Shown piece after piece: positions 16,836 to 49,421 of a stretch of 64,000 nucleotides of DNA. The DNA is taken from contig NC_135760.1 in NCBI RefSeq assembly GCF_052425735.1, forward strand, positions 248,001 to 312,000, given 5' to 3'. Under the pieces are notes generated by a model. That model was not told the DNA's origin, made no database searches, and saw only the letters and a list, made by a program, of their open reading frames with translations. Each line of letters begins with the position of its first letter. The stretch's first letter is position 1. This DNA comes from Oculina patagonica. Lineage: Eukaryota. A program made the position numbers and the translations under genes.

Positions 16836-16844
16836 GCAACTGTG

Positions 16845-17108
16845 GGAGGCGCGGATCGAACGGTTCCGGTTCGAGACCTAGCCGTGGCACTGCATTGTGT
16901 TCTTAGGCAAGACACTTTACTCTCATAGTGCCTCTCTCCACCCAGGTGTATAAATGGGTACCGGCAAATTTACTGCTGGGGGTAACCCTGCGATGGACTA
17001 GCATCCCATCCAGGGGGGAGTAGAAATGCTCCTAGCCGCTTAATGCTACAGAAACTGGAACAAGCTCCGGCCTGATGAGCCACTTGGCTCGTATGCGGGC
17101 TTAACCTT
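16845..17108 (+). mobile_element. tRNA-derived SINE
   Basis: B-box-like GGTTCGAGACC, conserved core TGTGTTCTTAGGCAAGACACTTTACTCTCA...CCACCCAGGTGTATAAATGGGTACCGGC, and a TTAACC tail. Related copies at ~26680-26860, ~44105-44297 and ~55915-56355 (- strand). Confidence 0.8.
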
Positions 17109-18708
17109 AACTAGCCTGCAACTATTTTACCTTTCTATTAATTTTTACCCTGTAAGCCTGATACAGTTTCCAAGGCTACACTAAAAAGTAGCCAGTACGA
17201 AGTAGTCGATCCCTTTCGCGCCCCTTCTCCCTAAGCACCCCAAGCTTTATACACGCCCCAAGCGCCTTCGGAAAGGAAGCAACTGAGCTATGGTTTTGCT
17301 ACAAGCTCCACGTTGACGTCTTGACGGGTTTATAACTAGGTGTACTGTAATTTAGCATGGTTCACTGTAACTAGGTGTACTGTAATTTAGCATGGTTCAC
17401 TAACTTTATTCAAAATACTTACTAGTATCCAAACAATTTTCCAAACGTTCTACTCAAGAAGCCTTCTTGTTCTGTAAAATAACATACAAAGAATTTAATA
17501 TTACCAATGATTGTACATTGCTTCATACTGATATAGAAGCTAAAGGACACTGAGTGAAAAACATTCATAGTTAAGTGCTTTGTGGACTCCGAAACCGGGA
17601 TTAAATATTATTGTTTCTTCTTTGACAAAATTACACTCAATAAAACACCGTGGACTTAGAAAACTAAGCTGCACGAGTCACACAAACCTTTACAGTGCAT
17701 TACATGTGAAGATAACTGAGTTTGTAAGCCGGAGTCCGTTTTTACTCCATTTAAATTCTCTTGTCATGTCAAAGCATTTTTGGTTTCTACTGATACAAAG
17801 TTCAAAGTTATTCTTCAAAGTGTCATATTTTGTATGTAAACAAGTTGCCGCGCTCAAACTTTAAATTTAGTCCAATAATTTACCTTATTATAGGAATATA
17901 ACGAAGCATTTTAACAACGCGAACAAAATGTACTCGTAATAAAATTAACGCGAATTTAAGAAAAGTTCTGGTTAGATGCTTATAGTAAACGTGTTTACAT
18001 AAATAAAATTAACGTGAATTTTTGAAATTCGCGTTAATAACATGTATCGTTAATTTTCTATAGTAAGGTAATTTAAACAGCAGAAAGCGAATGCCCTGAA
18101 ATTTTAAAGATTATTTACGTGCGTTATTAAACATACCGATATCAGGGAACGGCTGGGCACTACTTGTCTGAGTGAACGGATAAGCCGGGTAAGTGTTAGT
18201 CATTTGAGATCCATCGAACGGTAATGGTCGATGATGGGCGTATCCATTGCCTAAGCAAAAAACAGGAATATTCACCTTCAAAGGGACGGCTTCACTCGCG
18301 AAAAATTTAGGCGTGGCTCAAGCCACGACTGGCTATTTTTCATGTGTGATCGGTCTAGACTGACAACACAGTGTGACAGTTTTATATTTATTCGTGTGCA
18401 GCCATAAACGAGACCTTGACGGCTAAAAATATGGGCTTTAACTCCCCTAAGCGAGACAAAAAGCATCCTGAGCGTTTAAATGGGAGTCCCCCCGCGCCCC
18501 CAGGGCAACTGCCTTGAAGAAATCCTCAGAAACACAGTAGTCAAGGGAATGGATTCAAATTTTTCTTTGCTCTTTTTTGCTCTTAGATCAACATCTTTTC
18601 TTTGAGATATCCGTTTATAAGCCTTCCCTGTTAAAGGCCCATTTGTTACGCAACGAAAAAAATATTCCGGTTATATAAGCCCTCTTCCATCCAAGATTTG
18701 TATATTAA

Positions 18709-21700
18709 CTAACTGAAGTCCTTACGAAATTCTGTATAAGAAATAAGCAATAACAAGTTTGCAAGTAGCCTGTTTCAGGCTCTTGGTAGTTGGAGGAGAG
18801 CGAAAAAAAGCGGGCAAGCGAGGAAAGAGACGCGAGGCAGGACGAAGGCGAGCGAAGGAACCATAATACCTTCGCCTTCGTCCCGCTCATTTTTTTCCTC
18901 GCTTGCCCGCGTTTTTCGCTTTTCCCCAACTACCAAGAGACTGGAACAGCCTAGTTTGCAACTACAGAGCAGATAAAAACGTTTGATCAGAGTGGCTTTC
19001 TTAAAATATAAATATCCCTTATCAAAGTTCGGTATTACAACTAATCTTGTGTGTGTGTTTCCGTACCTTTCACTGCCTTTCTGAACGGGTTTATCGGTTT
19101 TTGAGAGCTGCCGGTCGCCTTAGCTTCAAAGCCATTTCTTTGAGTTGGGTTCGGTGGGTTGTCCTGGCCAGCTTGGGATGTAACAGCGGTGCCGTTCACG
19201 GGTGTAAATAGAGGTGATTGATGATTCACCTGTTGACTCTTCCCTAAAAAAAATATGGTGAATTCGAAATTTTCCATTTTGTTCACACTGCATAGTGTTT
19301 ATCATTTACTAAAAACGAATACACTGTTTAAAAGGAAACAAAATATGAAGATTTGGGGCACAAATAAGACCAAATAAAGCAGTAATCGTCCTGTCAAATT
19401 CCAATATTAAGGGTACAGTATTGTATGTTTCATTGTATGTACCTTTCGCTGCTGCCTTCCTAAATGGGTTTACGGGCCGCTTCTGAGAATTACCGGTTCT
19501 GTTTGGTTCAATTTTTGTTACGACTGGCTTGTTTTGATCAGCTTGGGGTGAAGTAGTGCTGTTCACAGGCGCGAGCTGTGGTGGTCCACAGCTTTTTTCT
19601 AAAAGAAATAACAATATTTATAATTTCACCAAGTGAAGCGCCTTGCTTTCTCAGGGAGTAAATCAGCACCAACACAAGAAAATGTTTTGGCCATGGTTTG
19701 ATTTTGATTTAGACACTTGTGTAAGTCACGGGCCATAAACGCTGCAAGTGAGTCTATAACAACGTAGTTACGACTGTTTAAATAATGCATATTGTGTAAC
19801 TGGAGTCAATAAAAGGAAAGGCTTCAGAATGAAGGCTTATCATGAAAAGAAAAATAAAATTTTCAAAGTAGTGGAGTATTGAGTGGTCCCGTGGGGGTAG
19901 GAATGGACAACCGGATTTGAGAGGTGGAGAGGGGCATGGTGAGAGCAAAGCGGAAGGCGGCTAGGGGTTGATAAAGCCCTTGGAGCGATGAAAAAATTAA
20001 TCTATTTATTGCTTATGCTTTGAAGCCCTGGAAATAGCCCTTACACCGCTTCATAAACCCCGACAAATCTTTCTTTTACTGTGATTTGACGCATTGGACA
20101 CTGATCAGCCCCCTTCAATGGACCGCATGTGTTTCGCCTGTCTTACCTTCAGCTGTCTTTGAGATCCTTGCATTCTCATGTTTCTTATCAGAAGAGCCCT
20201 TGATCCTGTTAGCATCAAGATCTTTTGCTCGGACTGGGTAGTTGTGAATTTGGAGGCATACAGTGTTGTTTGACAAAGTGTCAAACCATGATGGCTGAGG
20301 GTCGAAGTAATCTTTGGCTGAACAAGAGAAAAAAGGAACGAGGTAAAATACATGCAAACGTGCAACGCCAATTAACGAAGTCGCACAGTTTCGATATCAT
20401 GGACAAAAAGATAAATATCGAGTGTGGGGGCTAATTTTCGGAGTTTAAGGTGTGATTACGGTAGTTTATAGCAACTTATAGCTTACAAGTGTTTGGACTT
20501 AATCATGGGTCATACATCTTTGGAACCCATGTATGTTAGTCACTGAGGGCATTTGGTGTCCGCAATAAAGAAAGTCCGTAGTAACGGAAGGTTATTTTCA
20601 GAATTTCTTATTCACCGGGACTTTAAGTCCTGTCCGTAATAACGGGGTGTCCGTAATCGCGAGGTGACCGCAAGGCGGGAGTTGACCGTATGAGGTCGCT
20701 TTAATGATGCCACTGAGAGAGTACAAACCCGTCGTTGTTCTTTTTATTTCTTTGTCAATGAACTGAGTAACAGATTTTCCCTTCTATCGCTAATTCCCAA
20801 CTTCGTCGTCTAACCCCACGCCTCAACAGCTCGACATTACTTACTATAGCCACTTACCATTAAATAACTGTGGCTCAATCTGAAGACTTTCCACCTCTGC
20901 TTTCTTTCTAAAGAGGTTTTCTTCAGCTTGGGAGATATTCTCTTTCGTTTTCTCAAGTTCCCCATCAATTGTCTCCATTTGCTTTGCAAAATCAATCTCC
21001 GTTGTTTGCCCATTTTGCTCAGATAACTCTGACCCCGTTGTTTGCCCATTCTGATGTAGCTCCAAAACTGTTTCTTTAAGATGAGCAATTACCTTGTCTT
21101 TTGCCGACACACTCTCTTTCAGATAAGCGATTTCCTTTTCTTTAGCTGTCATGGTAGATAAAATAGAGAGTAAAATTGTCAAAGATGATAATGTCACTGG
21201 TTATAACTGATTCGCATATTCTTTACTCTGCAGCCTACAGTTAATTCGTTACTTAAATTTTTTGAGTTGCGAGCAGATACTTAACGCCAACTTCTCTTTA
21301 CTATAAATCATTCTTAAACTTACCATTACACTGTGCTTCGAGGACAGCAATCTTTTCTTCAAGCTCTTCCTTTTCTTGCTTGTACTAAGAGAAAAAAATA
21401 TCCAAATATCGAGTTAACTCTGATTTTCTAAAACTACTTATCTGTGGTGGTGGGGACAGGAGATGGTATCACAAAAACTGCTGGAATTGGAAAGACAGTA
21501 AGATAAGAGATACATTATTGGTACTAATTTCCAGGTCGCTTTAATTTCGCAATTTTCGCGATTTAAAAAAAAAATTTCCGCGAACTTTAATGTCGCGAAA
21601 TTGAATACCTTCCTATATTTTTTTGTCTACGTATTGTGTATAATGTGTAAAAGCTCTATGGCATGCCTACAAATAAGAGGCCCAAAAACTTTATGCCAAT

Positions 21701-22724
21701 GGTACACATAGCTCTAGCCAAGTATAATTCACGGCTACAATGTAAATATGCGTTATACAATTGCAAAGAACGTTAAGCACAAGGATAATGTCTTTGAATT
21801 TGCCTGTAGTACAAGATGTGTTTTTTATATAGTTTGGTTTTGTTGTAAGAAGTGTAAAATAATAATAAAATTCTCAAAATGAAATGTGTTTTTTAATTTT
21901 CGCGAAAAATAATTCCCTAAGAAAATAATTTTGCACGCAAATCGCGAAAATAAAGATCTGCGAAATATGCCGACTTTTTTTTTCGCGAAATTAAGTGCCC
22001 GCGAAAATATATTAGTACCAATAAGGTAATGACCAAAGGTAACAGATATGCTGAAGCGCTCATGTTTAGGCTATTGCTACTATGAACGAAATCTTATTTG
22101 TTTTTATTTTGGATAGTTACGTTGTGCAATTTTCATTTTAAACGTGGAAATTTGCGTCATAATTGAAAGAGTGAGTTTCCGCGCGCGCACTTTTTGTTTT
22201 TTCGGTGCAGGCGGAAATAAATAAATAATTTTCCCGAATCAGTAAATAGAGTTTAAAATGAGACAAATCCAATTCTGGTCCTATTTTATTTCAACACTTG
22301 AAACGCTTAATCAAAATGTTAATGATCTCTTCGATCTCGTCTTCAGTTGTCATTTCTTCAAAAGAAAAACGTTTGGCATCTAAATGTATCAAATTCTTAT
22401 ATCGCAATCGCGCGCTTTTGAAACATTTGTTCTCATATTTTGCTCACTCGCGAACGTAATAGTTTTATCCTTTGTAAGAGGAACGCAAAGCTGGACAGTT
22501 AATTCGATGAAAACTTAAAGCAATAAAAAGGAAACGCCCACCTCTCTAGCCATGATTCGCGCCACGTGTGAAGCGTCGAGTGGCTCATGTTTGTTTGTGC
22601 ACGGAAGATCACCAACATAAAATCCGCCCGTTCTCCCAGTCTCTACATCGCTAAAAGTATTTTGGCTGTAAAAGTCGCTAAACTCTTCAGCTGAAGTGTT
22701 TGATAAACACGAAGTACTATCCAT
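18709..22724 (-). CDS. Uncharacterised ~352-aa protein with coiled-coil segments and NPF-repeat exons (copy 1)
   Basis: Exons 22724-22542, 21384-21324, 21145-20858, 20317-20147, 19598-19443, 19243-19067 and 18731-18709 all have GT-AG sites, join in frame, and are open in both copies. The 3' end is uncertain: there may be an 18-nt microexon 18731-18714 plus a last exon 17883-17867. AATAAA at 17410-17405. Confidence 0.75.
18766..18953. mobile_element. Small TIR element (TAGCC...GGCTA family), 9-bp TSD
   Basis: TIR TAGCCTGTTTCAGGCTC; flanks GTTTGCAAG/GTTTGCAAC. Counterpart at ~36179-36381 and a relative at ~58029-58152. Confidence 0.75.
21513..22026. mobile_element. TA-flanked MITE (Tc1/mariner-type)
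   Basis: TA|CATTATTGGTACTAAT...ATTAGTACCAATAAGG|TA with internal TTCGCGAAA repeats; also present in copy 2 (~39215-39700). Confidence 0.7.
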
Positions 22725-22798
22725 CTTTTCTCAATTCTCTTTGCACTGTGCTTCAGCAAGCGCTCAACACCAAATGCGAAAAATTTTCAATCTGATAA

Positions 22799-22824
22799 GT
22801 TGCTATGACAACTTCCATGGTAAC
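22799..22824. promoter_or_regulatory. Tandem RFX X-box motifs upstream of the orphan gene (copy 1)
   Basis: GTTGCTATGACAAC plus an overlapping CTTCCATGGTAAC, ~75-100 bp upstream of the ATG; a CRE-like GACGTCAC at ~22845. Confidence 0.65.
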
Positions 22825-23512
22825 TGTTTGCGCCGTCACTTCAGGACGTCACTGAACGGGAAGCCTGGTGACTAAGATGTTTTCGCGCGAAAACGCAAAG
22901 TTGAAACTGATTCCCATCTGGCTGGTGATCTCGATTGATCCTAAAAAAAGTAAATAAAGCGTTCAGATTCTCTTTCTATTCTTTAGCTGTTTTGTAGTGT
23001 TTGAACTTCCTGACTTAATTATCAATTATTTGATTTTATAAACGATTAACACAATACTTACCGTTAAAAGTTCCAAAATATTCCGCTTCATGATATGTTG
23101 ATACATGTGTAGATGTAAAATTCTGACTTCAACATAACGTTAAATAAAACGTTAACTAGGAAAACTAAAAAAAAGGTTTCGTTACGTTGTCATTTTTTCG
23201 CCGTTTTGACTGAAAATCTTTGCCCTTCGCGCTTTAGAGTGACAAATTAGCAACTGAAAATACCAAAATTGCAGTCTGGAGTTGACATAACAAATTCTTG
23301 AAACGGTCTGACGCTGACTAAAGTGGAATGAAAACAACGTTCACAGTAAAATTTGTAACAAGACTTTTCGACCGCAAACCTACGACTTCGGTTTGAAAAA
23401 AGCAACAGCTAACTTAACGGTTCACATTTGCGCGTGCGCGGTTGACTGAATACAACAAAACACGCGAACTGCGCGAGACCGGTGAACATTGCGAAGCGAT
23501 TTGTATGACTAA

Positions 23513-24083
23513 TAAGTAATTATTGGATGAGGTTGAGCATGATATCGTGAATTATCAAAACCGAGGTCTGTGTTATCTGCCGAAGCCGAAGGCTGAGGCA
23601 AATAACACGGACACGAGGTTTTGATAATTCACGATATCATGCGAAAACCGAATTCAATAATTGTTTTATTATACGTTTTAAACAATTTGCCATCACTTTT
23701 TCTAGCACCGGCGTAAAACTTCGTCAGAACATTGGCTAAAGCAGTTTTATCTTGTGGTTCCTCCAGGTTCTTCTCCCTCAAATAATCATTCAGAATTTTT
23801 ACACTTGTTTTTGTTGTTCTCTTGGTGTTTTTAGAATCTTTATTCACGATCAAAACTTTTAATTCCTCTTCGGAAGCGGAGGCGAATCGCTCAGCCATAT
23901 TTTCAAAAGTTTGACAGCACTACACGGACGAGGGGCTTGGAAACTAGGCGGACTTTGAACTCGACATGATAACCCAATATCTGCTGCAGATATTGGGTTA
24001 TCATGTCAAGTTCACATGCTACTGTATATTGACTGAATGCTCTCGACCAATCACATGTTTCAAAGTAATTCTTATGTATAATA
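23513..24083 (-). mobile_element. Crypton-like (tyrosine-recombinase) non-autonomous element with a truncated ORF
   Basis: Absent from copy 2, with no TSD. Long terminal hairpin at ~23538-23642. ORF 23898-23629 MAERFASASEEELKVL...KNTKRTTKTSV...LTKFYAGARKSDGK resembles the N-terminus of Crypton/DUF3504-type recombinase proteins. Confidence 0.65.
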
Positions 24084-24662
24084 ATTGTTAAATATCTGGC
24101 ATTGCTGGTCTCTGCGAATGACACATGCTTCAAGGAAAAGCCTCAAGGTAATTGTTCGCTTTGTCAACAACAGTGGCGAGGTAAACATCCATTTCATGGT
24201 GAAAATGCAGGGTCGGACAGGGGGGTAAGTGGTATACCAGTATACCTGAAAAGCATGTACCCAGTATACCCAAAATTTCCCCTCAAAATCAAGCAAAATA
24301 CCAAATTTGGAATAACAAAGTATACTTTATGCAATTTTAGGATAATCTTAAATTAGTCTTGATCAAAAAGTGCAATCACGACATACTGTTAGTTACACGT
24401 GAATGCAAAATAGCCGCAAGCTCATAAACATGTCCGTACGGAGAGGTTCGACTGTAAATTGATGGGCCTGGAACAGGCTATCCTGGAACATGCGCTTAAT
24501 AAACCCCTATTTGCGCATGCCTTTTTCTTTTTTCTAAGACATCCTTATTGCAATTAGGTGTATATATATTTTAGATCGATTCCAAAGCCGAAATCTTACT
24601 ATATTCAGCGCTGGAAAGCGCAGAAATAAACTTCACCCAGAGGATGACACCTCTCTAATACG

Positions 24663-25368
24663 CCCGGGGTATGCAACCGAACAAAATCGAACCAAAAATC
24701 AATCGAACCCAATCGAACACCGATCGTTCGATCGGGTTCGGTAATCGAACAAAATCGAACATCTATTTTGCTGTGAGTTCGATTATCGAACCAATCGAAC
24801 CAATCGGACATAATCAAACACAATCGAACTCAATCGGGTTTGATTTTGTTTGGAATCTTTCTCTTGATAAGTAAATCACGCAGGACTAATCAAAATCAAC
24901 TTTTATTGAATGGAATAAATATAAAAATGTCCAAATATCGAACTGAATGTCAATGTTTAGTAAAATATATTTGGTAGAAGATAACAAAACAACGGTAAAA
25001 TAACTGAAATGCACTATTGTTTACATTCCTATATTAGAAGGAAGGATATGGTTTCTGCCCTGCTTTTCACCGTTACACTCAAACAGAATTTGCACCATTT
25101 CATTCACTGCAACACAGGCAGTTGTGTTTAATATGTGAAGAACACACATTTGGCAAAATTTCTCCCAACTTCGTGGCAGACTGCTGTGCCCGTGGCTATT
25201 GTGCAGACAATCGTCCTATCCCGAAGTATGACGAATCGCCAAAAAAGGATTAGGGGAACGGTGCACCGTACAATATGTACGCAGTATAAACAAACAGACC
25301 CCGAACCCAATCGAACGATTGGTGTTCGATTGAGTTCGATTACCGAACGTTCGATTGGATACCCCGGG
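24663..25368. mobile_element. 706-bp TIR element with a 6-bp TSD
   Basis: AATACG|CCCGGGGTAT...ATACCCCGGG|AATACG; empty site with a single AATACG at ~42180 in copy 2; subterminal AATCGAAC repeats. Confidence 0.9.
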
Positions 25369-26417
25369 AATACGGCCACCTCCCTATTACGGACGATCTC
25401 CAATGTCCCAACAAAATTTTCTTTTATTCTGTTTAGAAAAAAAACCTCTATAGTCTCAGCCCCAGGGAACAAATTCGTATAAACTTAACCCCCTTATAAT
25501 ATGGATACCTGTCTAATACGGACACTTTGCTCTGTCCCTTCGGTGTACGTATTAGAGAGGTTCAACTGTATCTTGTTACACCATAAGTGAAAAGATATTA
25601 GCGCGTGAGTTTTCTGTAATAGCTACCAGTCAATAACGTTATTGCAATTAGGTGTATACGGTAATTATGTGAGAATAAAATCGACCAATCAGCAAAACCG
25701 CGAATATAAAGCTATAAGGCGACGAGTGGAGGGTTTTTTGACACAGGCTATAGAAAAGAAAGAAAGTGTTGCAGCATGCAAAGAATGATTCCTGATTTTG
25801 TCTCGGTTTATATTTTCAGTATTTGATCTTAGATTTTAGTCTTTGAGTTAAATCGGCGTTTAATCGAGAAAATACAGCACTGAGACTTACAGTAACAGAT
25901 TTCTGTTGCTTGGATATTCCGCGGATTTTTTTTGCGAGAAAGACTTGCGACTTCGACACGCACAACATAGGCATACCCCTTCAAACGCGCACACAATCGT
26001 GTAGCAAATACTCCTTCTTACGGAGATATTTGCCTTTCAAAATACTGAAACAACAGGATTTTGCTAACGAGCTAAAATTTGCAAAAACTGGCCATTTTCA
26101 AGGCGGACCATTTTGCTCATTAACGTATTTCCAAACGTTGCACACAATAGAAGAGACCTTTTCATGGAATTAATTTAATATTTAAACCAACAGGAATCAG
26201 TACCGAGTAAGAAATTAACGGATTCTGTTGTCTTAATATTCAGAGAATTCCTCTCCATAAGAGACGTGACTTCGAAAGTTTGCACACAATAGACATGGAA
26301 TCGCACTCTTTCAAACGGGCACCCAATTGCCCAAGAAATCCTCCTTTTAAGGAAATATTTACATTATGTTTATTTGAATATTTAACGTGTATTTTCTTTC
26401 TCTTGAAATTTCGAACC

Positions 26418-26501
26418 ATCCTTTTAGCAGAGTTGCTTCGATCTTTCCTAGCTAAGTCCCAACTTATCAAGGTAAGATCGAAGCAACTCTGCTAAAAGGA
26501 T
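26418..26501. repeat. 84-nt near-perfect hairpin
   Basis: Perfect 28-bp arms extending to a 40-bp stem with 3 mismatches and a 4-nt loop; identical at ~43842-43925. Confidence 0.9.
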
Positions 26502-28135
26502 ACCTTTCACGGGGAAATACAGACATCAATATTAAACCAATAGGAATTGGGTAAAGAGTTAGAAACTGCCCAAAGTGACCATTTTCAGCGTAGACCATTC
26601 TGCTCATTAACAGATTTTTACCTGAATATTCAAATAACAGAAATCAGCTAACGAGAAAAATGGAGACTAGCAGTACTTCTACCTCCACCCCCAGGGTCAC
26701 CCCAACATTAAATTTGCCAGTACCCATTTGTATATCTGGAGAGAGGCGGACTGGGAGTCAAGTCTTCTGCCCCGTCTTTTGCCCAAGAACAGAAACAGGG
26801 CTCGAGTACCAACTACTTGATCCAAGTCCAGTCGGCTAACTGCTAGGGCCACGGCACCCTCACCACGTAACATAACACAAGAATAATCGCAAACACAAGG
26901 ATAAATGTGTTCACTTTTTAATAAGCCTACAGATACATGTGTGTGTTGCAGTGTACACTAGTGAGGTTATCAGGTTGTGCTCTTACATGTGTAAGTGAGA
27001 ATCAGCCAAGTCACAAAAAAGGACAGTCTCGAATTTGTTAATTTATTATTGTTAATTTATTATTATGATGTAAATGTAAACTAGTATTCATTAATTGTAA
27101 GACTGATAATGTAATAAATATAGAGTAGTTTTGATGGATGCATGGTATCATGTAGTGTCCAGTATTACACTAGTTGTGTTTGGTTAAAAAACAGAAAACA
27201 ATGATTTAAAAAAAATCCAGTCAGCTCCCATGGAGTAGACGCAAGGCCACGTTATCCCTCTTTGGTGTCATACAAGAGGCCTGAGGCATGAAGTAGTGAT
27301 CAGCCACCACTTAACCGTTGTGGAGTTGGATATTGGCATCTAGAAAGGAACAGAGGAAACAGTACAATTAATTGTTAATTTACCATGGCTGTGGGTAGTC
27401 AGTGAATTTTGGGTGGTGTGTTACTGGAGCTCTAAAACCCTTACCCTATACCCCATGCTCAGCTGCACTTTGCAACCATAATAACAAACTGTACATACCA
27501 AAAATCCCTACTCTAGATTGATCCCCAGACAAGCTAGTTTTCAGAACCTTTATAACTATTACAGTCAGTTGCTACTTAAGCTGCCACAATTATGCAAACA
27601 AGTGAGATATCAATTTGAACATGAGAAATTTCATATCTCCAAGCAGCCATGTATTTTATTTGTATTTCAATTTGTGTAAACCCATGTGTCAGGTTTTACA
27701 TGCAAAGTCTAGACTGAATTCTTCAAACCACTGATAAATGGTGTCACCCCATCAATGTCCTTGATAAAGCATGTGGCATCTGAAAACCCATCACTAAAAC
27801 GACTGGTTTATACTATCAAGGGAAAGAACTCTGGTTTAATTTTCACACCTTTTTTGATGAGATATTACAAATAAAATTTATGAAAAGCTGCTAAACTGTA
27901 AACTTCACAAGGTTAATTGTAAAATTCATTAACTATTCATGAGGGTGCAAACCAATCCCAGCACAGTATTCAGATCACATGTACACCCCTGTAAACCCCA
28001 ATACAAATCAAACAATATAATTAACTTTTGATACAGACTCCTGCTCAGCTAATTAGTATTCATTAACTTTTGATACAGATCTTGACTGATTCGCATAACA
28101 AAACTTTCCATTCAATTTATTGTTTTCATTTCACA

Positions 28136-28205
28136 AGTAGAATAAAAAATTCGCGTCCGATCTGTATGGCCGTTTACAATGGCTCGCCTAACGACTCGCC
28201 ATTGT

Positions 28206-28243
<38 letters not shown>
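28136..28243. repeat. Short hairpin-type repeat
   Basis: GATCTGTATGG.CGTTTACAATGGC...GCCATTGTAAACG.CCATACAGATC; also at ~45565-45672. Confidence 0.6.
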
Positions 28244-28246
<3 letters not shown>

Positions 28247-31200
28247 CTAAAAAATTCAACTTACAATCCAAACCTCCAATGGACAGGAGTAATGGCACTT
28301 CTCCAGCTGTATGTCCTTGTACAGGTACATTAGGAAATTAGTAGATCTTCAACACTGAGAGTTCCATTTTCCTCTGTTTAACTAGACAAAACGAAAAACA
28401 ATAGAGTGACATCAATTGTCATCACTGGGCAATTCCATGACTTAATTTCAATCATAACCTAATGATTTCACATTGGAAAATTATTGTGTACTAAATTACT
28501 GGTCATTATTTAGAAGATGATGCCACTTTATTTCAATTTATTTTAAAATGTAAAACCTAGAACTGAACACGAAAATTTGCTTGTCAACCATCTGTCCATT
28601 TTCAATAAATTATTTACCTTAAATCCAGGTTATTTTTAAGTTTGCAAGATTGACGACTTCAATTTGATGACCTTGTTTTTGCCAAAACAAGGTAAAACAG
28701 GTGATTTCTTCAGTTGAGTAGAACAAATTTAAAGAGCTAACTAAGGCTAATGTTTAAACTCGTTGCATTTAAGATTAACAACCATCACTGCATTTAGGGT
28801 TAATATCAATTTGACAAGCAGTGACTGTAACAAAAAGAAAAATATACTTAACCTTCTAAGAATGCACATTGTTGTACAATCCAGTTTTTTATTGTAACAG
28901 CAATTAATCTATCCTTTAAAATTAACCTGTTATATTTTATCCTTGGGTTATAATTCAAGTACTGTAAAAGCTGTCTTAAGCCCTAGGGGTACTTATTTCT
29001 TCTTCTGACCACCTTTTTTTGGAAGGGGGGGGGGGGGTTAATAGTCAAGTGGGATTGTTGAGATGGGGTGGCTTATAATATTTCAAATCATAATCAGTTA
29101 GTGTGTATGAAAAAAATTAAGTGGGCTTCCAAAGTTTGAGTGCTGTTTAGTAACACATTTTCACAAAAAGTAACAACAAAAAGAAAATGTGGTGGATGGA
29201 CAACTTTAAAAGTGTAAATAAAACCTTGTTTTCTTTTTCGTAAAATTAATTGTCACAATCTACTATCTAGAGAAAGGGGAGGCTATTTAAAAATTGAACT
29301 TCCAGATGGGGTCTTAAAACAGCTTTTAGAGTAACCATTAATAAAACAATAGATTTACCTTCAGATCATTACTCTGCTGGAATGAAGTCTTCTTCAAGGC
29401 TCATTTTGTTCTCAAAAGCTTTAGGCAGTTTCCATATTTAGCTTGGTTTCTTCATGTGTTACTACGACGTTTTTTTAAAAGTTGATTTGAATAATTTTAA
29501 AGGAGTGTTTTCTGCTGTCTGGTAGGTATTAATCCACATAATTACTAGCGCAAGTTTAATGTTATTACACCCTCTGCAATTTCAGGTTTTAGCTATGCAC
29601 GTCTGTGAAGGAAGTTATGGCAAACATTTTTTGTTCGGTACCTTTAGCAAAGTTGGTTCGGAGCTACCATATTCTTTTCGCTAAGCGTCTTTGGCTTTTA
29701 TTTCAAACTTACATGTAGCCTGGTGAACCCGGCGTTTATTTGACTCCTACCGTTTATTTGAACCTGATGTTGGGCATGATGCATCAGCAAAGGTTTACAC
29801 TTGATAAAAAACAAGCAACAAGTGACATCCATGTTAGAATGGAATTAAATTAGTTGCAAAATTGTTTATTTAACTTGATTCCAGTAAGGATGTGTATTGC
29901 AAGTGGGTTCAAATAGAAGTTGCTGTTCTATAGATTCAACAACAGAAGAGGAAGCCAGTGTTAATATACATGTACACATGTACTTCTGTACTTTTTTTAC
30001 CTTACTTTAAAACTGCATATGATACTACAGTAAGAATAAGACGTTGAGAGATCACTCAGTTACAAAATAGCCAAGCCTTTATTGATATATAACAGGAGGT
30101 TTAAAAAACGTTTACTCCTTATTTCAAAAGCTGAGTAATTCTTGAATAACTGGACATACATTTTGTCTGTATTCAAAGCACGGTTTCAAAACAAAACGAT
30201 CATGTTTATAAAAATACACATAAAACTATATCTGGGACATATTTATGTCACATTTTACCAAAAAATATATTGATTTTGCTTGGAAGCCTTCTCCAGTTGG
30301 AAGTGTTTAATACTTCATCCATGTTTAAAGAATGTATCAAATGTTATGGCTCATTGACGTGTTTAGTTTTTTGACACCACCTAACATTTCAAAGCCAGAA
30401 ATTCTTTATTAAGAAATTCAAGGAAGTATAAAACATTTATAAATGTATAAAACGGTGAGTAATTTGAGAGCAACAGAACAAAATAATTATTACAAACAAA
30501 AACATTGTGTTTATAAAAATAGATGCAAAACTCTGGGACTTATTTATTGAAAATAGTAGTCCAATCCATTTAGATAACCATATTTTACTCAAAAATATTT
30601 GATACCACTTGGAAGCCTTCTCTTGTTTAAATGTTACATATTTAAACAATGGTTTTACAAAAAAATGTGTCATTCATTTATGTCTCAGTGAAGATTTAGA
30701 TGTTTTTTTTTTCTGATTGTAAAGGTGTTTAGGAAAGGTCACAAAGATAACATTTAGTTCAGAGTTCATGCCAAGGGATTATTCTTTATAGTATAGTTAA
30801 GAAATTTCTGTGATCTTTCATAGATTAATGTTTCAATTTCTTAAAAACAACCATAGTGGAATGACCAAACAGTTTAGCAATGTTTATCACTTTATTGAGT
30901 TCAATAACAACAGGTAGCTTAAGAGGTTATTTAATTTTAACATACAAGCTTAACAACATTAGGTTTAATTAAGTTTTTTTAAAAATTAACCATTTAGTGG
31001 CTGACGATGCCCTTGTTTATCAAAAACTTAGGAGTTAAACGTTTGTTGTATCAGACATGATGACATGCAGTTTTAGATAATTTAAACATTATAAAAGAAA
31101 ATAAATCTCTCATCTCATAGATGAAAAAAGGGTTTAAGAGTACCAGTATACATGTCACATACTTTACCTTGACCTGTTTTATATGCTACATAATGTATTG

Positions 31201-31673
31201 GATAACATAAGGTTTAAATTTTAGCAACAAAACAAGCCTGGAATATTATGACATTGCCTAACAACTGGAAAGGTTTTTTTATGGTGTAACTGTTTAGCCA
31301 AAATAATCATTTTATACCGGTAAGTTTAAATGAATGGAACATTACTTGGTAAGGCATTAATTGTGTTCATCTTCCTTCTTTATCCACGTTTACCGAAGGC
31401 TCCATGCACAAAATTTCTTCAATTATGTACAAAAAAGAAATTAAATTGATTAACATTTCAATGTTTAGCAAAAGAAACCATGACTAAAAAACACTTATGA
31501 AAATAGCTGTCATCTCTACACTACAATGTAACAGAACGGGAAATAAGCACACTGCTACCTTTTTAACATGGAATATAGGCGTGTGCTTGTAATAATTTGT
31601 AAGAAATTTATCAAAACTCTATTAACAAGGCTTTAGATTCAAACGAGAATCCCTAGAAAAATTTGTAACTACT

Positions 31674-31771
31674 TCAATAAGGGTATGCTGCTTCACGAAC
31701 AATTTTCTTGACAGTACGAGCTGGTGGTGCCTTGAAAGTTGCAGATGAACTCACTGGAACTCTGGTTGGAG
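31674..31771 (-). pseudogene. Duplicated terminal coding exon of KHDRBS with no upstream exons in this contig
   Basis: Identical coding sequence to 49205-49108 ([32 protein letters not shown]) with an intact acceptor. Confidence 0.8.
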
Positions 31772-32262
31772 CTAAAATAAGAAGTTAATGTGAGTTTAAG
31801 ATTACCACTTATTGTAATGTTATGAGTTGAGCTGGAATAAAATTCATATTAGACTTAACAATATTTATTAAATTACACCGACTAAAGTTAGCCTTGTCTG
31901 AATAGTTTTAAAGAGTTATTCCTCGACCAATTAAACACACATGAACACTTTAAGCAACACCTTATTGTAGGAAGGTTTTGCAACAACCATTTTAACTTTA
32001 ACGATTGAAAAACATCACAAAGATTAGAGAGACAAAAAGTGAAAACAAATAATTTTAAAGTCTATATTTAAAACACCTCATAAACTACTTATTTGTCAAG
32101 CTGTGCTCCTCTCCACTTAAGTGTGAGAAAAGTAACAGCACCTTGTCTTTAGTTATTTGTCACTTTGAGAGGTACATTATATACTACACAGTTACATATT
32201 TATCAGAGTGGGCAGGGCTGATATTTTTAAATGGCAAAAGCAGTACTTTTAACCCATTTTAT

Positions 32263-32739
32263 TATATGTCTACAATAGTACGCGCGCTCTGATTGGCGGC
32301 TGAGCGGGCATTATTTTCTTGTAATGACCGGGCATTATGAAACTTTTTCTCGGCTTGACGGTTTTTTGAGTTGTGAGTTAAAGCTACTAGCGAGGGGGCA
32401 AAAAACAACAAAAAATGCCGACAAAATATAACTATCTTTTCAATAACTGAAAGAAAAATATAAGCATACCGATACTTCTTTAGTATGAGCGACGAAGAGA
32501 GCCACAGAGAGCGAGTTTTACCTCCAGTGTTTTTTCCCTTGATTATACTCTTTTTTTTGAATAGTGCTTAAAGGCCATATAATAAATAACTTATTAACCT
32601 CGTCCGTTCGGCCATTACAGGGGAATCTCAGACCTCGACCTTGATGTATTGACCTCGCTGTCGCTCGGTCAATACATCACGGCCTCGGTCTAAGATTCCC
32701 CTGTAATGACCTCACTCTCGGTTAATAAGTAGTATAACC
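32263..32739. mobile_element. Hairpin-ended (Crypton-like) repeat adjoining the gap
   Basis: Not present at the homologous position in copy 2; CTGATTGG head; terminal hairpin at ~32590-32730. Confidence 0.5.
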
Positions 32740-33239: not shown

Positions 33240-35745
33240 ATCCGCAGGCAAGCTTATACAGGTGCTTTTGCATAACAGACACAACAAACCTTTTCTACTA
33301 CCGACAGAGCAATTCTCTTTTCGTGCGCCAGTAACATGAACGATTTGGCATATTATGTGAAGTATCTTCCTGGCGCCCGGTCCAGGCCGCTTCAAGCAAC
33401 TTCGTTAGAATGATGACCGATTCAGTTGACCAATGTCGAAATGACCATCGTGCTATTGAAGCATACAATTCTCAAATCAAAATATGTTTGTAGTGACATA
33501 CCTGACTTTTTTTCCGCCAAGCGAGTTCGCGCGCCGCTTAACATAATTTATTCTACCGCCAGACACGAAAATTGATCCACGTAACGTATAAGTGTTGACA
33601 ACATCATCTTACGAGACCGCGCGCAGCTTCAGTCCAAGAAAATCTGGAGCTTTTCGTCTTCTCATTCTGCGATACAGTGCTCAAGAGCATAATTTTAAAG
33701 CGACGAAAACAAAGCTGTGGGCCCGTTTTGCGGACTACATTCGTGAAAGCAGGGGAATTAATTTTAAATTTGTTTTTCCCCTACAAATGTTTGAGTTATA
33801 TACAAATGCTTTCTGGTGTTTTGTTTTGTTTTTTGTTCGTCAATTATTATTACTTTAGATCCTTGTTATTCATATTTAATATTGACTTTGCTTGCATAGC
33901 GCGGCTATGCAATCACTTTAATTGCCACATCACTTTAATTGCCGAATCCTGCAGATTCATAAAGTTATTTATAGCGAAAGTCTTGACGAACATCTCATTA
34001 CATCTGTCAAGTGATGAGTTGTGACTGATGTTTTGCACTCCTCCTGCGAGCTTTACCGAGCTTCAAATTGCAAGATCTGTCAACACGCCTATTGTTTACT
34101 ATTGCGAAATCGGTGCACTGAATGTACCCATGGCCGACACTATCGCAGGTTGCTAAGGCGTGCGGGTCCTCATGAACCTTACCTAACCTGCAACTATTTT
34201 TGCTTTCTATTAATTTTTACCCTGCAAGCCTGATACAGTTTCAAAGGCTACACTTACAGGTACGAAGTAGTCGATCCCTTTCGCGCCCCTTCTCCCTAAG
34301 CACCCCAAGCTTCATACACGCCCCACGCGCCTTCGGAAAGGAAGCAACTGAGCTATGGTTTTGCTACAAGCTCCACGTTGACGTCTTGACGGGTTTATAA
34401 CTAGGTGTACTGTAATTTAGCATGGTTCACTAACTTTATTCAAAATACTTACTAGTATCCAAACAATTTTCCAAACGTTCTACTCAAGAAGCCTTCTTGT
34501 TCTGTAAAATAAAATACAAAGAATTTAATATTACCAATGATTGTACGTTGCTTCATACTGATATAGAAGCTAAAGGACACTGAGCGAAAAACATTCATAG
34601 TTAAGTGCTTTGTGGACTCCGAAACCGGGATTAAATATTATTGTTTCTTCTTTGATAAAATAACACTCAATAAAACACCGTGGACTTAGAAAACTAAGCT
34701 GCACGAGTCACACAAACCTTTACAGTGCATTACATGTGAAGATAACCGAGTTTGTAAGCCGTAGTCCGTTTTTACTCCATTTAAATTTTCTTGTCATGTC
34801 AAAGCATTTTTGGTTTCTACTGATACAAAGTTCAAAGTTATTCTTTAAAGTGTCATATTTTTTTGTGAACAAGTTGCCGCACTCAACCTTTAAATTTAGT
34901 CCAATAATTTACCTTACTATAGGACTATAACGAAGCATTTTAACAACGCGAACAAAATGTCCGCGTAATAAAATTGACGCAAATTTAAGAAAAGTTCTGG
35001 TTAGATGCTTATAGTAAACGTGTTTACATAAATAAAATTAGCGCAAATTTTTGAAATTCGCGTTAATAACATGTATCGTAAATTTTCTATAATAAGGTAT
35101 CTTAAACAGCACTGAAAAAGCGAATGCCCTGAAATTTTAAAGATTAATTACGTGCGTTATTTAAAAATACCGATATCAGTGAACGGCTTGGCACTACTTG
35201 TCTGAGTGAACGGATAAGCCGGGTAAGTGTTAGTCATTTGAGATCCATCGAACGGTATTGGTCGATGATGGGCGTGTCCTAAGGAAAAAACAAGAACATT
35301 CACCTTCAAAGGGACGGCTTCACTCGCGAAGATTTTAATTTAACCCCTAAAGGAGTTCAATCTAGGCGTGGCTCAAGCCACGACTGGCTATTTTTCATGT
35401 CTGATTGTTCTAGCCCGACAAGACAGTGTGACAGTGTTTTATATTTATTCATGTGCAGCCCTAAACGAGACCTTGACGGCTAAAAATATTGGCTTTAACT
35501 CCCCTTAGCGAGACAACAAGCATCCTGAGCGTTTAAATGGTAGTTCCCCCGCGCCCCAAGGGCTACTGCCTTGAGGAAATCCTCATGAACACAGTAGTCT
35601 AGAGAATGGATTCAAATTTTTTTCGGAGAGAATATCACCCCGCTCTTAGATCAACATATTATCTATAAGCCTTCCCTGTGATAGGCCCATTTGTCATGTA
35701 ACTAAAAAAGAAATATTCCAGTTATATAAGCCCTCCCGGATTTAA

Positions 35746-36087
35746 AGCTGATTTCCAGTCCGTACTGCGCAGACTCGGCGTTTGTTTTCGTTTTTGTTTT
35801 GAATTCGTTGAAACGTTACACTTCGGTGACAGCATACATGAGGTTTTTTAGTCCGCCATTACAGTTCGTTTCGTTCACGAATTTCCGATGAGCTGAAACG
35901 TCGGTTTGAAATAGCGTCAAGGTTCTTCTACTCGTTATTATTTGTTCTGCAAGGATATCTGGCATTAATAATGAAGAAAAAGGTAAGTTTGTCGCGGAAT
36001 TTTTAGTTTTGCTTGTAAACATCTCTTCGTGTGAGGCTCACATAAACATTGCAGCCGAGATTGCGCAGTACGGACTGGAATTCATCT
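35746..36087. mobile_element. 342-bp TTAA-flanked TIR element (Kolobok-like 5'-AG termini)
   Basis: TTAA|AGCTGATTTCCAGTCCGTACTGCGCA...TGCGCAGTACGGACTGGAATTCATCT|TTAA; absent from copy 1 (~18680). Confidence 0.75.
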
Positions 36088-36121
36088 TTAAGCCCTCTTC
36101 CATCCAAGATTTGTATATTAA

Positions 36122-39100
36122 CTAACTGAAGTCCTCTAGAAATTCTGTATAAGAAATAAGCAATAATAAGTTTGCAAGTAGCATGTTCCAGGCTCTTGCA
36201 TTGGTAGTTGGGGGAAAGCGAAAAATGCGGGCGAGCGAGGAAAGAAACGTGAGGCCACGGGACGAAGGCGAGCCAAGGAACCATAATACCTTCGCCCTCG
36301 TCCCCACTCGTTTTTTTTTTCTTTTCTCGCTTGCCCACGTTTTTCGCTCTCCCCCAACTACCAAGAGCCTGGAACAGCTTAGTTTGCAACTAGAGAGCAG
36401 ATTAAAACGTTTGATCAGAGTGGCTTTCTTAAAATATATTTATATCCCTCATCAAAGTTCGGTATTTAATACAGTGTTATTGTCTTGTGTGTGTGTTTCC
36501 GTACCTTTCACTGCTTTTCTGTACGGGTTTATCGGTTTTTGAGAGCTGCCGGTCGCCTTAGCTTCAAAACCATTTTTTTGAGCTGGATTTAGTAGATTGT
36601 CCTGGCCAGCTTGGGATGTAACAGCGGTGCCGTTCACGGGTGTAAATAGAGGTGATTGATGATTCACCTGTTGACTCTTCCCTAAAAAAAAATTGTGGTG
36701 AATTCGAATTTTGCCGACTTGTTCAAACTGCAAGGTGTTTATCGTTTTCTTAAAGCGAATACACTAATTAGAGGGAAAGAACATTACGAAGATTTTCAGC
36801 ACAAATAAAGCAGTAATCTTTTTGTCAAATTCCAAGGAAATAAATATCAAGGAAACAATATTCATTGATCGGTGTCCTTCGTTCCCCGTACCTTTCGCTG
36901 CTGCCTTCCTAAATGGGTTTACGGGCCGCTTCTGAGAATTACCGGTTGTGCTTGGCTCAAAGTTTCTTACGACTGGCTTGCCGCGGTTTTGATCAGCTTG
37001 GGACGAAGTAGTGCTGTTCACAGGCGCAAGCTGTGGTGGTCCACAGCTTTTTTCTAAAAGAAATGACAATATTTATAATTTCACAAGTGAAGCACCATGC
37101 TTTCTCAGGGAGTAAATCAGCACCAACACAAGAAAATGTTTTGGTTTGATTTTGATTTAGTCGCTTGTGTTAGTCACGGGCCATAATTAAACGCTGCAAG
37201 TGAGTCTATAACAATGTAGAACAATTCATGTTTACGACTGTTCAAATAATGCATCCATGTAACTCAAGAAACTAAGTCAATAAAATGTGTCCCAAGGAAA
37301 GGCCTCAGGATGAAATCTTATCATGAAAATAAAAATAAAATATCTCAAAGAAGTGGAGTATTGAGGGGTCCCGTGGGGGTAAAAATGGACAACCGGGTTT
37401 GAGAGGTGGCGAGGGGCGCGGTGAGAGCAAAGGGGAAGGTGGCGAGGGGTTGATAAAGTCCCTGAAGCGATGAAAAAAAAATCATATATTTATTGCTTAT
37501 GCTTTGGAGCCCTGGACATAGCCCTAACATCGCTTCAGAAACCCCGAAAAATCTTTCTTTTACTGCGATTAGACGCATTGGGCATTGATCAGCACCCTTC
37601 AATGGACCGCATGTGTTTCGCCTGTCTTACCTTCAGCTGACTTTGAGATAATTGCATTCGCATGTTTCTCATCAGAAGAACCATTGATCCTGTTAGCATC
37701 AAGATCTTTTGCTCGTACTGGGTAGTTGTCAATTTGGAGGCATACAGTGTTGTTTGACAAGGTGTCGAACCATGATGGCTGAGGGTCGAAGTAATCTTTG
37801 GCTGAACAAGAGAAAAAAAAGAAAAAGGTAAAATACATGCAAACTTGCAACGCTAATTAACGAAGTCGCACAGTTCTGATATCATGGATAAATGGATAAA
37901 AAGCGAGTGTGGGGGCTAATTTTCGGAGTTAAGGTATGATTACGGTAGTGTATAGCAACTAATAGCTTACAAGTGTTTGGACTTATCATGGGTCATACAT
38001 CTTTGGGACCCATGTATGTTAGTCACAGAGGGCATTTGGTGTCCGCAATAAAGGAAGTCCGTAGTAACGCAAGTTATTTTCAGTATTTCTTATTCACCGG
38101 GACTTTAAGTCCTGTCCGTAATAACGCGGTGTCCGTAATAGCGAGGTGTCCGCAAGGCGGGAGTTGACCGTATGAGGTCGCTTTTATGATGCCACTGAGA
38201 GAGTACATAGCCGTCGTTAATCTTCTTATTTCTGTGTCAATGAACATAGTAACAGACTTTCCCTTCCATCGCCAACCTCGTTCCCAGGGTTTTCCCCTTT
38301 GTAATTTGGAACGGGCGAGCCGTTCCAAATTACCAAGGGGAAAGCCCTGGGAACGAGGTTGTTCTATCGCTAATTCCCAACTTTACCTCAAGTCTAAGCC
38401 CGCCTCAACAGCTCAACATTACTTTCTAAAGCCACTTACCATTGAATAACTGTGGCTCAATGTGAAGATTTTCCACCTCTGTTTTCTTTCTAAGGAGGTT
38501 TTCTTCAGCTTGAGAGATGTTCTCTTTCGTTTTTTCAAGTTCCTCATCTATTGTCTCCATTTCCTTTGCAAAATCAATCTCCGTTGTTTGTCCATTACGC
38601 TCAGGTACCTGTGATACCATTGTGTGCCCATTCTGCTGCAGCTCTAAAACTGTTTCTTTTAGATGAGCAATTACCTTGTCCTTTACCGACACCCTCTCTT
38701 TAAGATAAGCAATTTCCTTTTCTTTAGCTGTCATGGTAGATAAAATAGAGAGTAAAATTGTCAAAGATGATAATATCACTGGTTATAACTGATTCGCATA
38801 TTCTTTACTCTGCAGCCTACAGTTAATTTGTAGTTTGGCTATTATATTTTTGCAGTATTCAGAGTGCTTACCGATCAATCGTTGTATGAATGATATTAAT
38901 CAATCTTTCAATTTCTCGTTTTATTAAAATAATCAAATGAGTTTTCGTCACTGAAATTTGTTTGAGTTGCGTGCAGATACTTAAGGCCAAGTTCTTTTTA
39001 CCATAAATCATTCCTATAAACTTACCATTACACTGTGCTTCGAGGACAGCAATCTTTTCTTCAAGCTCTTCCTTTTCTTGCTTGTACTAAGAGAAAAAAA

Positions 39101-40401
39101 TATCCAAATATCGAGTTAACTCTGATTTTCTAAAACTACTTATCTGTGGTGGTGGGGACAGGAGATGGTATCACAAAAACTGCTGGAATTGGAAAGACAG
39201 TAAGATAAGAGATACATTATTGGTACTAATTTCCAGATCGCTTTAATTTCGCAATTTTCGCGATTTAAAAAAAAAAATTCCCGCGAACTTTAATGTCGCG
39301 AAATTTAATACCTTCCTATATTTTTTGTCTACGTATTGTGTATAATGTGTAAAAGCTCTATAGCATGCCTACATATGAGAGGCCCAAAAACTTTATGCCA
39401 ATGGTACACATAGCTCTAGCCGAGTATAATTCACGGCTACAATGTAAATATGCATTGTACAATTGCAAAGAACGTTAAGCACAAGGATAATGTCTTTGAA
39501 TTTGCCTGTAGTACAAGATGTGTTTTCTATAGTTTGGTTTTGTTATAAAAAGTGTAAAATAATGATAAAATTCTCGAAATGAAATGTGTTGTATTTTAAT
39601 TTTCGCGAAATATAATTCCCCAAGAAAATAAGCTTGCACGCAAATCGCGACCTTTTTTTCGCGAAATTAAGTACCCGCGAAAATTAGTACCAATAATGGG
39701 AGTAATGACCAAAGGTAACAGATATTGCTGAAGCGCTCATGTTTAGGCTATTGTTAATATGAACAAACTCTTATTTGTTTTTATTTTGGATAATCACGTT
39801 GCGCAATTTTCATTTTAAACATGGAAATTTGCGTCATAATTGAAAGAGGTGAGTTTCCGCGCGCGCACTTTTTGTTTTTCGGTGCAGGCGGAAATAAATA
39901 AATAATTTTCCCGAATCAGTAAATAGAGTTTAAAATTAGACAAATCAGATGAGTCCAATTCTGGTCCTAATTTATTTTAACACTCGAAAAGCTTTTGGTA
40001 ATGATCTCTTCGATCTCGTCCTCAGTTTTCATGTCTTCAAAAGAAAACGTTTGGCAACTAAAAGTATCAAATTCTTTTATCGCAATCGCGCGCTTTGAAA
40101 CGTTTGTTCTCATATTTTGCTCACATGCGAACGTAATAATTTTATCCTTTGTAAAAGCGACGCAAAGCTTAACAACTAATTCAAAGAAAACTTAATGTAA
40201 TAAAAAGGAAACGCCCACCTCTCTAGCCATGATTCGCGCCACGTGTGAAGCGTCGAGTGGCTCATGTTTGTTTGTGCACGAAAAATCACCAACACAAACT
40301 CCGTCCGTTCTCCCAGTCTCTACATCTCTAAAAGTATTTTGGCTGTAAAAGTCGCTAAACTCTTTAGCTGAAGTGTTTGATAAACACGAAGTACTATCCA
40401 T
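36122..40401 (-). CDS. Uncharacterised ~354-aa coiled-coil/NPF protein (copy 2)
   Basis: Exons 40401-40219, 39086-39026, 38727-38440, 37801-37631, 37053-36892 (6-nt in-frame insertion), 36681-36505 and 36144-36122. Splice sites and frame are conserved with copy 1. Confidence 0.75.
38273..38361. mobile_element. 89-bp palindromic micro-MITE, 9-bp TSD
   Basis: TTCCATCGC|CAACCTCGTTCCCAGGG...CCCTGGGAACGAGGTTG|TTCTATCGC; empty site in copy 1 at ~20782-20790. Confidence 0.9.
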
Positions 40402-40474
40402 CTTTTCTCAATTCTCTTTGCACAGTGCTTCAGCAAGCGCTCAACACCAAATGCAAAAATTTTCAATCTGATAA

Positions 40475-40500
40475 GTTGCTATGACAACTTCCATGGTAAC
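40475..40500. promoter_or_regulatory. Tandem RFX X-box motifs (copy 2)
   Basis: Identical to copy 1. Confidence 0.65.

Positions 40501-45633: not shown

Positions 45634-45674
<41 letters not shown>

Positions 45675-49384: not shown

Positions 49385-49421
<37 letters not shown>

Follow-up and report, generated by a model that had tools for sequence, protein, structure and literature searches.

The sequence analyzed here is a 64,000-nucleotide window of eukaryotic DNA (about 40% G+C) from Oculina patagonica, a stony coral (chromosome CM126637.1, near 0.26 Mb), with two gaps of 500 N each at 16336-16835 and 32740-33239. It carries two copies, A and B, of a gene for an uncharacterized coiled-coil protein with NPF motifs, and each copy is preceded by the same pair of overlapping X-boxes, a type of promoter element recognized by RFX transcription factors. 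The conservation of this element across the related coral genes is the strongest result of our analysis. With the exception of one plus-strand gene mentioned below, all genes discussed are located on the minus strand.

Structure of the gene in copies A and B

Based on a reading of the minus strand and scripted splicing, the full model of copy A comprises eight exons encoding 399 amino acids. Exon 1 (22542..22724; 61 codons) begins with the ATG at 22724 and encodes a disordered N terminus with a conserved HEPLDASH..RIMA motif. The coiled coil begins in exon 2 (21324..21384) and continues in exon 3 (20858..21145), in which 16 of 96 residues differ from those of copy B, exactly the number that had been counted by hand in the initial annotation of the window. 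Exon 4 (20147..20317) encodes a DYFDPQPSWFDTL...NYPVRAKDL module, which is the most conserved in the family. Exon 5 (19443..19598) and the homologous exon 6 (19067..19243) contain the first and the second NPF module, respectively (...PVNPFRKAAAK and ...PINPFRKAVK, the latter with NPY in copy B). Exon 7 (18137..18250; GNGYAHHRPLPF...PFPDI) and exon 8 (17422..17471; EQEGFLSRTFGKLFGY and the stop codon) complete the reading frame, exon 8 encoding a conserved C-terminal amphipathic helix. GT donors and polypyrimidine-AG acceptors are present at every splice site of exons 1 to 6, and exons 3 to 6 are all of phase 1-1.

The spliced translation of copy A is an exact match to P0032 (KAL9979904.1, XP_078361605.1), which is isoform X2 of LOC144645967 and annotated as "uncharacterized protein". 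Copy A is a genuine protein-coding gene of O. patagonica. Exons 7 and 8 came to light through annotated Oculina proteins that phmmer retrieved from 1.84 billion representative proteins, with exon 3 as the query, and that were mapped back onto the window. The initial annotation had proposed seven exons and about 352 amino acids; its first six exons stand, but exon 7 had been overlooked, and the exon proposed in its place (about 18731-18709, ending EFRKDFS before a stop codon) has to be rejected because the C terminus given here matches the RefSeq and GenBank protein exactly and is kept in every relative. The gene thereby extends about 1.3 kb beyond the end assigned earlier. The coiled-coil peptides quoted at the time and the two NPF motifs are all present in the translation, and the supposed low-complexity tail is better named a disordered region made of repeated NPF modules. 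Intron 6 contains a near-perfect hairpin of about 190 bp at 18770-18961, resembling the inverted repeat of a miniature inverted-repeat transposable element (MITE), with a counterpart in copy B at 36172-36377. It lies in the region where the 3' end of the gene had previously been set.

Copy B (34452..40401) consists of the same eight exons (40401-40219, 39086-39026, 38727-38440, 37801-37631, 37053-36892, 36681-36505, 35278-35171, and 34501-34452), all of which are intact, as had been claimed for the first six. Its protein is 88.9% identical to that of copy A, and its exon 7 carries a 6-bp in-frame deletion.

The X-box and its conservation among family promoters

The twin X-box of copy A is a 26-bp block at 22799..22824 on the minus strand, 75-100 bp upstream of the ATG, in which GTTACCATGGAAGT overlaps GTTGTCATAGCAAC. 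The identical block precedes copy B at 40475..40500. We used two X-box patterns, the strict Caenorhabditis elegans-type GTHNYYATRRNAAC and the spaced form GTNRCC N0-3 RGYAAC. The 14-bp site GTTGTCATAGCAAC, located at 22799-22812 in copy A and at 40475-40488 in copy B, is a perfect match to the strict pattern, which has five matches at three loci in the window (two of them palindromic) compared to 0.6 expected from shuffled sequence. Of these three loci, two correspond to the promoters of A and B. A further minus-strand block, immediately 5' of the X-box at 22825..22852, contains GTGACGTC, GTGACGG, and a CAAACA core, of which we take the first to be a site like the cyclic AMP response element (CRE) and the last to be Fox-like. 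There is no divergent gene within 3 kb upstream, and thus the X-box belongs to this gene.

For phylogenetic footprinting, we aligned the 150 bp preceding the ATG of eight promoters from four genera, namely Oculina copies A and B and an Oculina paralogue, the Desmophyllum gene, two Pocillopora verrucosa genes, and two Stylophora genes. All eight promoters contain an X-box starting with GTTACC in the same place, about 75-100 bp upstream of the ATG, and its core, GTTACCA.G.A, is the longest invariant run of the alignment. The 26-mer of Oculina is identical in Desmophyllum, and the Oculina paralogue differs from it at two bases. Pocilloporids have a single 13-bp X-box, GTTACCA[TA]GCAAC; the P. verrucosa sequence GTTACCAAGCAAC fits the spaced form and the Stylophora sequence GTTACCATGCAAC is one base off. 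The block AAGTGACGGCACAAACA, preceded by a CRE-like TGA[CT]GTC, is found in seven of the eight promoters and is missing in the Oculina paralogue. The X-box assignment of the initial annotation is thus not only upheld but strengthened.

Two side observations concern X-boxes elsewhere. Exon 1 is missing from the GenBank model of the Desmophyllum pertusum gene (KAJ7373446.1); a homologue of the Oculina start codon (MDS..., L003:4557-4700) follows the conserved X-box block at a distance of about 75 bp. The third perfect X-box of the window, GTAACCATGGCAAC at 7543-7556, is positioned inside or at the exon edge of a plus-strand gene with an open reading frame (ORF) that appears spectrin-repeat-like by eye, and it may be either a chance occurrence or an intragenic RFX site.

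With the footprinting as support, control of the gene by an RFX factor is likely, and given this predicted control, so is expression in ciliated or flagellated cells. X-boxes of this size are an established sign of a ciliary gene, and some genes are known to have two of them (PMC3245922). As in the targets of RFX/DAF-19 in C. elegans (xbx, bbs, and intraflagellar transport genes), the coral site is an imperfect palindrome of 13-14 bp within about 100 bp of the ATG and is conserved in orthologues. The two adjacent sites of Oculina and Desmophyllum are reminiscent of the C. elegans gene F25B4.2, which has two X-boxes (PMC3245922). By contrast, the coral sites abut or overlap instead of being 50 bp apart, their dependence on RFX is a prediction, and the coral protein differs from members of the C. 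elegans ciliome in having no known ciliary homologue and in being confined to robust stony corals.

Alternatively, the X-box could function in a non-ciliary RFX program or as a repressor site, with the protein acting as a general cytoplasmic trafficking or scaffold protein. It weighs against a ciliary role that X-boxes also serve non-ciliary RFX programs and that paired X-boxes can repress (PMC3245922; also a paper on RFX7), and the protein bears no similarity to any known ciliary component. However, the longest Stylophora transcript contig in Logan starts about 45 nt downstream of the X-box, which provides a minimum estimate of the transcription start site and corresponds to the classical arrangement of ciliary targets. 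Moreover, the X-box was kept in at least eight gene copies despite fast evolution of the protein. On balance, we consider a non-ciliary role unlikely. The gene is an uncharacterized, X-box-bearing candidate ciliary gene, and the conserved X-box singles it out as one that may have been added to the coral ciliome in this lineage. In corals, cilia move mucus, generate feeding currents, and propel larvae and sperm. The ciliary prediction can be tested directly in existing single-cell atlases of Stylophora and Pocillopora.

A protein family of robust corals

Homologues were found only in Scleractinia of the robust clade in searches of 1.84 billion and 5.8 billion proteins, and neither a profile search nor a search with the C-terminal half alone identified any relative outside the robust corals. 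Oculina has a second gene on another chromosome (LOC144663575, with seven RefSeq isoforms), which is the paralogue included in the promoter alignment. Further relatives are present in D. pertusum, in Pocillopora verrucosa, P. meandrina, and P. damicornis (several paralogues), in Stylophora pistillata (two genes), and among fragments from a coral-derived metagenome and from Logan. The suggestion of a lineage-restricted gene is therefore supported. The label "orphan" holds only in the sense that no known family is matched, since RefSeq does annotate the gene and it is one member of a multigene family that includes a paralogue on a different chromosome. Literature searches by gene, protein, and run accession retrieved no paper naming them, and none describing the O. 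patagonica genome assembly was found either.

Sequence identity to relatives of other genera is between 39% and 56%. Family members share an N-terminal HEPL[DE]A..RIMA motif followed by a coiled coil of about 115 residues, one to three copies of a well-conserved [DY]FD.QPSWFD.L..N..C....N.PV.AKDL module (here termed SWFD module), zero to four modules ending in [VI]NP[FY][RS]K.A, and a C terminus kept in every relative, ...HRPLP...FP..EQ.GFLSRTF.KWFGY. In Oculina, Stylophora, P. meandrina, and an unidentified coral, NP[FY][RS]K closes each of the repeated modules. There are two NPF motifs in copy A and three each in the paralogue, in Stylophora, and in P. meandrina, each of them terminating a repeated module, and NPY replaces NPF once in copy B and twice in the Logan protein P0055. 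Transcripts of a family member from an unidentified coral (Logan SRR28002483 and SRR28002497; L009:637-1991 and L010) have a frameshift in the SWFD exon, present in two independent runs, which places the coiled coil and the NPF modules in different frames; they may stem from a pseudogene or from a broken allele of that species that is still expressed.

In a maximum-likelihood tree, the Oculina and Desmophyllum genes are arranged as (Desmophyllum, (Oculina LOC144663575, (copy A, copy B))) with support of 100/98, and the pocilloporid genes group into expansions of their own. Duplication of whole genes, and of the symmetric phase 1-1 exons that encode the SWFD and NPF modules, has enlarged the family. 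Profilin adjoins both LOC144663575 and the Desmophyllum gene, so that the locus in the window, downstream of the Sam68-like gene KHDRBS, is a derived duplicate that arose in the Oculina lineage from an older profilin-linked gene. Synteny with KHDRBS was looked for at the orthologous loci and was not found, profilin being the ancestral neighbor.

For the NPF-type orthologue of Stylophora, a contiguous ORF of 562 amino acids is present on three Logan contigs that were assembled from three runs and are 2.1-3.3 kb long. Because the corresponding genomic locus, of 4.2 kb, contains introns, the family is transcribed and spliced. Like other lineage-restricted modular families of Scleractinia, this one is limited to one coral clade, multi-copy, and fast-evolving, with duplicated symmetric exons. 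Unlike those, it is intracellular, without a signal peptide, and carries a conserved cilia-type promoter element, which provides a concrete, testable functional prediction not available for most such coral families.

The protein of copy A consists of a disordered N terminus with the HEPLDASH motif, a coiled-coil stalk, one QPSWFD module, two NP[FY]RK modules, and a short amphipathic C-terminal helix, GFLSRTFGKLFGY. AlphaFold2, run on the family alignment, yielded a model of two helices plus disorder with a mean predicted local distance difference test score (pLDDT) of 51. The long helices span residues 51-121 and 134-168 with pLDDT above 90, and a short helix is positioned at the C terminus (388-397). 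The remainder, including the NPF region, scores below 50 and is disordered. The C-terminal helix (GFLSRTF.KWFG) is amphipathic, with a hydrophobic moment of about 0.45. The model was not used in a fold search because bare helices produce meaningless matches. Consistent with the earlier statement that no known family could be assigned, Pfam searches with single exons and with full-length family members returned no family at threshold, but only sub-threshold cross-matches to coiled coils. A PDB sequence profile search matched only fibrinogen and designed coiled coils, and the best scores in the ESM Atlas (0.84) were for unrelated hypothetical proteins and were uninformative.

Among the sub-threshold Pfam matches, PF17045 (CEP63/DEUP1) was the most consistent, with four of eight family members, and it always placed the start of the coiled coil at profile positions of about 16-110 (best match 24.6 bits, E = 2.5e-5, for P0022). 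The coral protein could hence be viewed as a highly diverged centrosomal CEP63/DEUP1 member, with an N-terminal coiled coil of comparable length. This is very improbable, however, since 24.6 bits is below the 33-bit gathering cutoff, P0032 itself has no PF17045 match, and the unrelated coiled-coil families Fib_alpha, Fez1, and Mis12 score alike. Only heptad-like sequence is matched and nothing outside the helices, so that the SWFD, NPF, and C-terminal modules are without counterpart.

The NPF motif is the classical ligand of EH domains, as found in Eps15, intersectin, and EHD proteins, and EHD proteins together with NPF partners act in the formation of ciliary vesicles. The mechanism that we consider most likely is that an RFX factor switches the gene on in ciliated or flagellated cells, where the protein would form a dimeric coiled-coil scaffold with a disordered tail presenting short linear motifs. 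The NPF modules might bind EH-domain trafficking proteins of the Eps15, intersectin, or EHD type, the C-terminal amphipathic helix might contact a membrane, and jointly these activities would serve vesicle traffic at the ciliary base. In the NPF adaptors epsin, AGFG1/Hrb, Rab11-FIP2, MICAL-L1, and PACSIN2, as in the coral protein, several NPF motifs are located in a long disordered region beside a dimerizing or membrane-binding element, and the motifs are conserved while the sequence around them drifts. By contrast, the coral protein lacks sequence homology to these adaptors and has no ENTH, C2, BAR, CH, or ArfGAP domain.

Several observations argue against EH-domain binding as the general role of these proteins. 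In the coral motif, NP[FY][RS]K, NPF is followed by basic instead of acidic residues, which is atypical of EH-domain ligands, and the Y in place of F that is tolerated in copy B and in another coral does not correspond to a classical EH ligand. Half of the family, the pocilloporid double-SWFD type, is devoid of NPF, and NPF therefore cannot constitute the core function of the family. It is more likely that the invariant SWFD module and the C-terminal helix form this core and that NPF is an add-on in one subfamily.

Relationship and divergence of the two copies

Copies A and B are contained in a repeated unit, of which 17103-32263 is homologous to 34175-49996, with the copies about 17 kb apart. 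The unit includes the last coding exon of KHDRBS (31772-31677 and 49206-49111, encoding the same protein sequence in both copies), the 3' region of KHDRBS, and the coiled-coil gene, and the upstream exons of KHDRBS (57618-51047) are single-copy. The initial annotation had left a choice between two diverging paralogues and deeply diverged alleles. Here the evidence leans toward alleles: the second copy probably represents the alternative haplotype of this locus, which was not collapsed during assembly, rather than a paralogue. Copy A makes up a contig of 15.9 kb (16836..32739) with 500-N gaps on both sides. Divergence along the unit is mosaic, with non-coding identity of 97.3-97.7% over 25.4-32.3 kb vs 87-91% over 18.7-23.4 kb, as would result from recombining alleles with varying coalescence times, whereas a single date of duplication would have to be supplemented by gene conversion.

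Gene models at the locus are chimeric. RefSeq LOC144645967 merges both copies in one gene, and among its three isoforms there are two that start in B and end in A: X1 combines B exons 1-6 with A exons 7-8, and X3 combines B exons 1-4 with A exons 5-8. The joins always lead to the next homologous exon (40401-36505 joined to 19243/18250-17422). These isoforms are more suggestive of recombinant alleles that were aligned to a duplicated locus than of real read-through splicing; the switch reflects either such recombinant alleles or an annotation artifact of the doubled locus. Similarly, the GenBank model of copy B (P0001, ACROYT_G008423) crosses the N gap after exon 6 (36505) to 31778-31677, thus skipping the intact exons 7 and 8 of copy B in favor of the duplicated last KHDRBS exon. 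The O. patagonica assembly probably retains haplotigs, with chimeric gene models in GenBank and RefSeq as a result, and this is of importance for counts of gene duplicates and for substitution rates between paralogues in this genome.

Some observations do not fit well with a haplotig. The outermost 267 bp and 476 bp of the copy A contig (16836-17102 and 32264-32739) are without a match in B and resemble transposable elements (TEs), with a palindromic MITE-like element at the right end. A protein divergence of 11%, which would be allelic if copy A is a haplotig, is very large between alleles, and a true tandem duplication would also be expected to leave gaps at the boundaries of the repeat. Accordingly, the copies may be recent tandem paralogues that arose through a 16-kb duplication comprising the last KHDRBS exon, the 3' region, and the gene, followed by gene conversion that homogenized the KHDRBS-proximal half. 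In agreement with this, the gene is complete in A and B alike, its splice sites are undamaged, derived changes are equally numerous in the two, the family duplicates readily, and the TE-like ends of the A block fit TE-mediated duplication. One independent Logan contig matches B at 99.6% but A at only 84%, which establishes that B-type sequence is real outside this assembly and is a further point in favor of tandem paralogues. Nevertheless, this scenario has to accommodate the coincidence of copy A with a small contig bounded by gaps, requires an extra assumption for the mosaic of 2.3% vs 9-13% non-coding divergence, and makes the exon order n to n+1 that the RefSeq chimeras keep across copies unlikely, as cis read-through would not be expected to preserve it. 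We therefore regard tandem paralogy as the less probable of the two and copies A and B as probable alleles.

The full alignment of A with B covers 397 codons and contains 45.5 non-synonymous and 25.5 synonymous changes, corresponding to a non-synonymous rate (dN) of 0.050, a synonymous rate (dS) of 0.108, and a dN/dS of 0.46, which is significantly below 1 (Fisher p = 0.003). By region, dN/dS is lowest in the SWFD module of exon 4 (0.12; most constrained) and highest in the disordered NPF region (0.55; least constrained). When polarized by the paralogue and Desmophyllum, 12 derived amino acid changes fall on A and 12 on B, which indicates that neither copy is decaying. This is relaxed purifying selection as is typical for disordered protein, not positive selection.

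Locally, the pattern is uneven. Exon 1 has seven replacement and no silent differences, and exons 7-8 have four replacement and none silent. In exon 3 (20858-21145 in A vs 38440-38727 in B), synonymous divergence is 0.28 vs 0.05-0.07 in the flanking introns, and seven of the differences cluster in a 12-residue locus-specific insert with an internal QNGQTT duplication. Gene conversion from the paralogue as the source of the divergence in exon 3 is unsupported because derived bases occur on both copies (by eye, in the first approximately 100 alignment columns) and because changes across the whole protein are 12 vs 12.

The gene had earlier been described as fast-diverging, which is an overstatement, and a cilium or sperm protein had been proposed, of which a rapidly evolving, sperm-specific reproductive protein is the sharper version. 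One report describes RFX2 as a major regulator that drives mouse spermiogenesis (PMC4498915). The CRE-like sites upstream of the X-box, the quick evolution between genera, the turnover of the family by duplication, and the exclusively non-synonymous differences in exon 1 would all suit such a protein. But the overall dN/dS and the symmetry of derived changes do not bear out positive selection, there is a clear excess of non-synonymous change in no region save the exons with small counts, and the protein has neither a signal peptide nor a domain of the gamete-recognition type. Furthermore, the full-length transcripts of the Stylophora orthologue came from three ordinary runs, which would suggest more than a rare germline message. 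A sperm-specific protein of this kind is accordingly quite improbable.

As a whole, the data are best explained, with somewhat more confidence than doubt on our part, by a gene of a coral-only family that is driven by RFX and encodes a coiled-coil scaffold, with copies A and B as its alleles. A more far-reaching version appears to us a long shot. It holds that the family was invented in robust stony corals and wired into the ancient RFX cilia program as an adaptor from the EH-domain vesicle machinery to the ciliary or flagellar base, and that the two Oculina alleles, which differ in 11% of residues, are kept by balancing or diversifying selection, the gene itself being the most divergent stretch vs about 2.5% in the flanks.

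Two database entries in this family deserve a comment. The Logan ORF P0069 (SRR28110921, L013:564-977) spans an in-frame stop codon, apparently through the use of an alternative genetic code, and exact-protein lookups of Logan ORFs called through stop codons are therefore unreliable. NCBI and UniRef list P0033 of P. verrucosa as "structural maintenance of chromosomes protein 2", evidently a misnomer brought about by its coiled coil.

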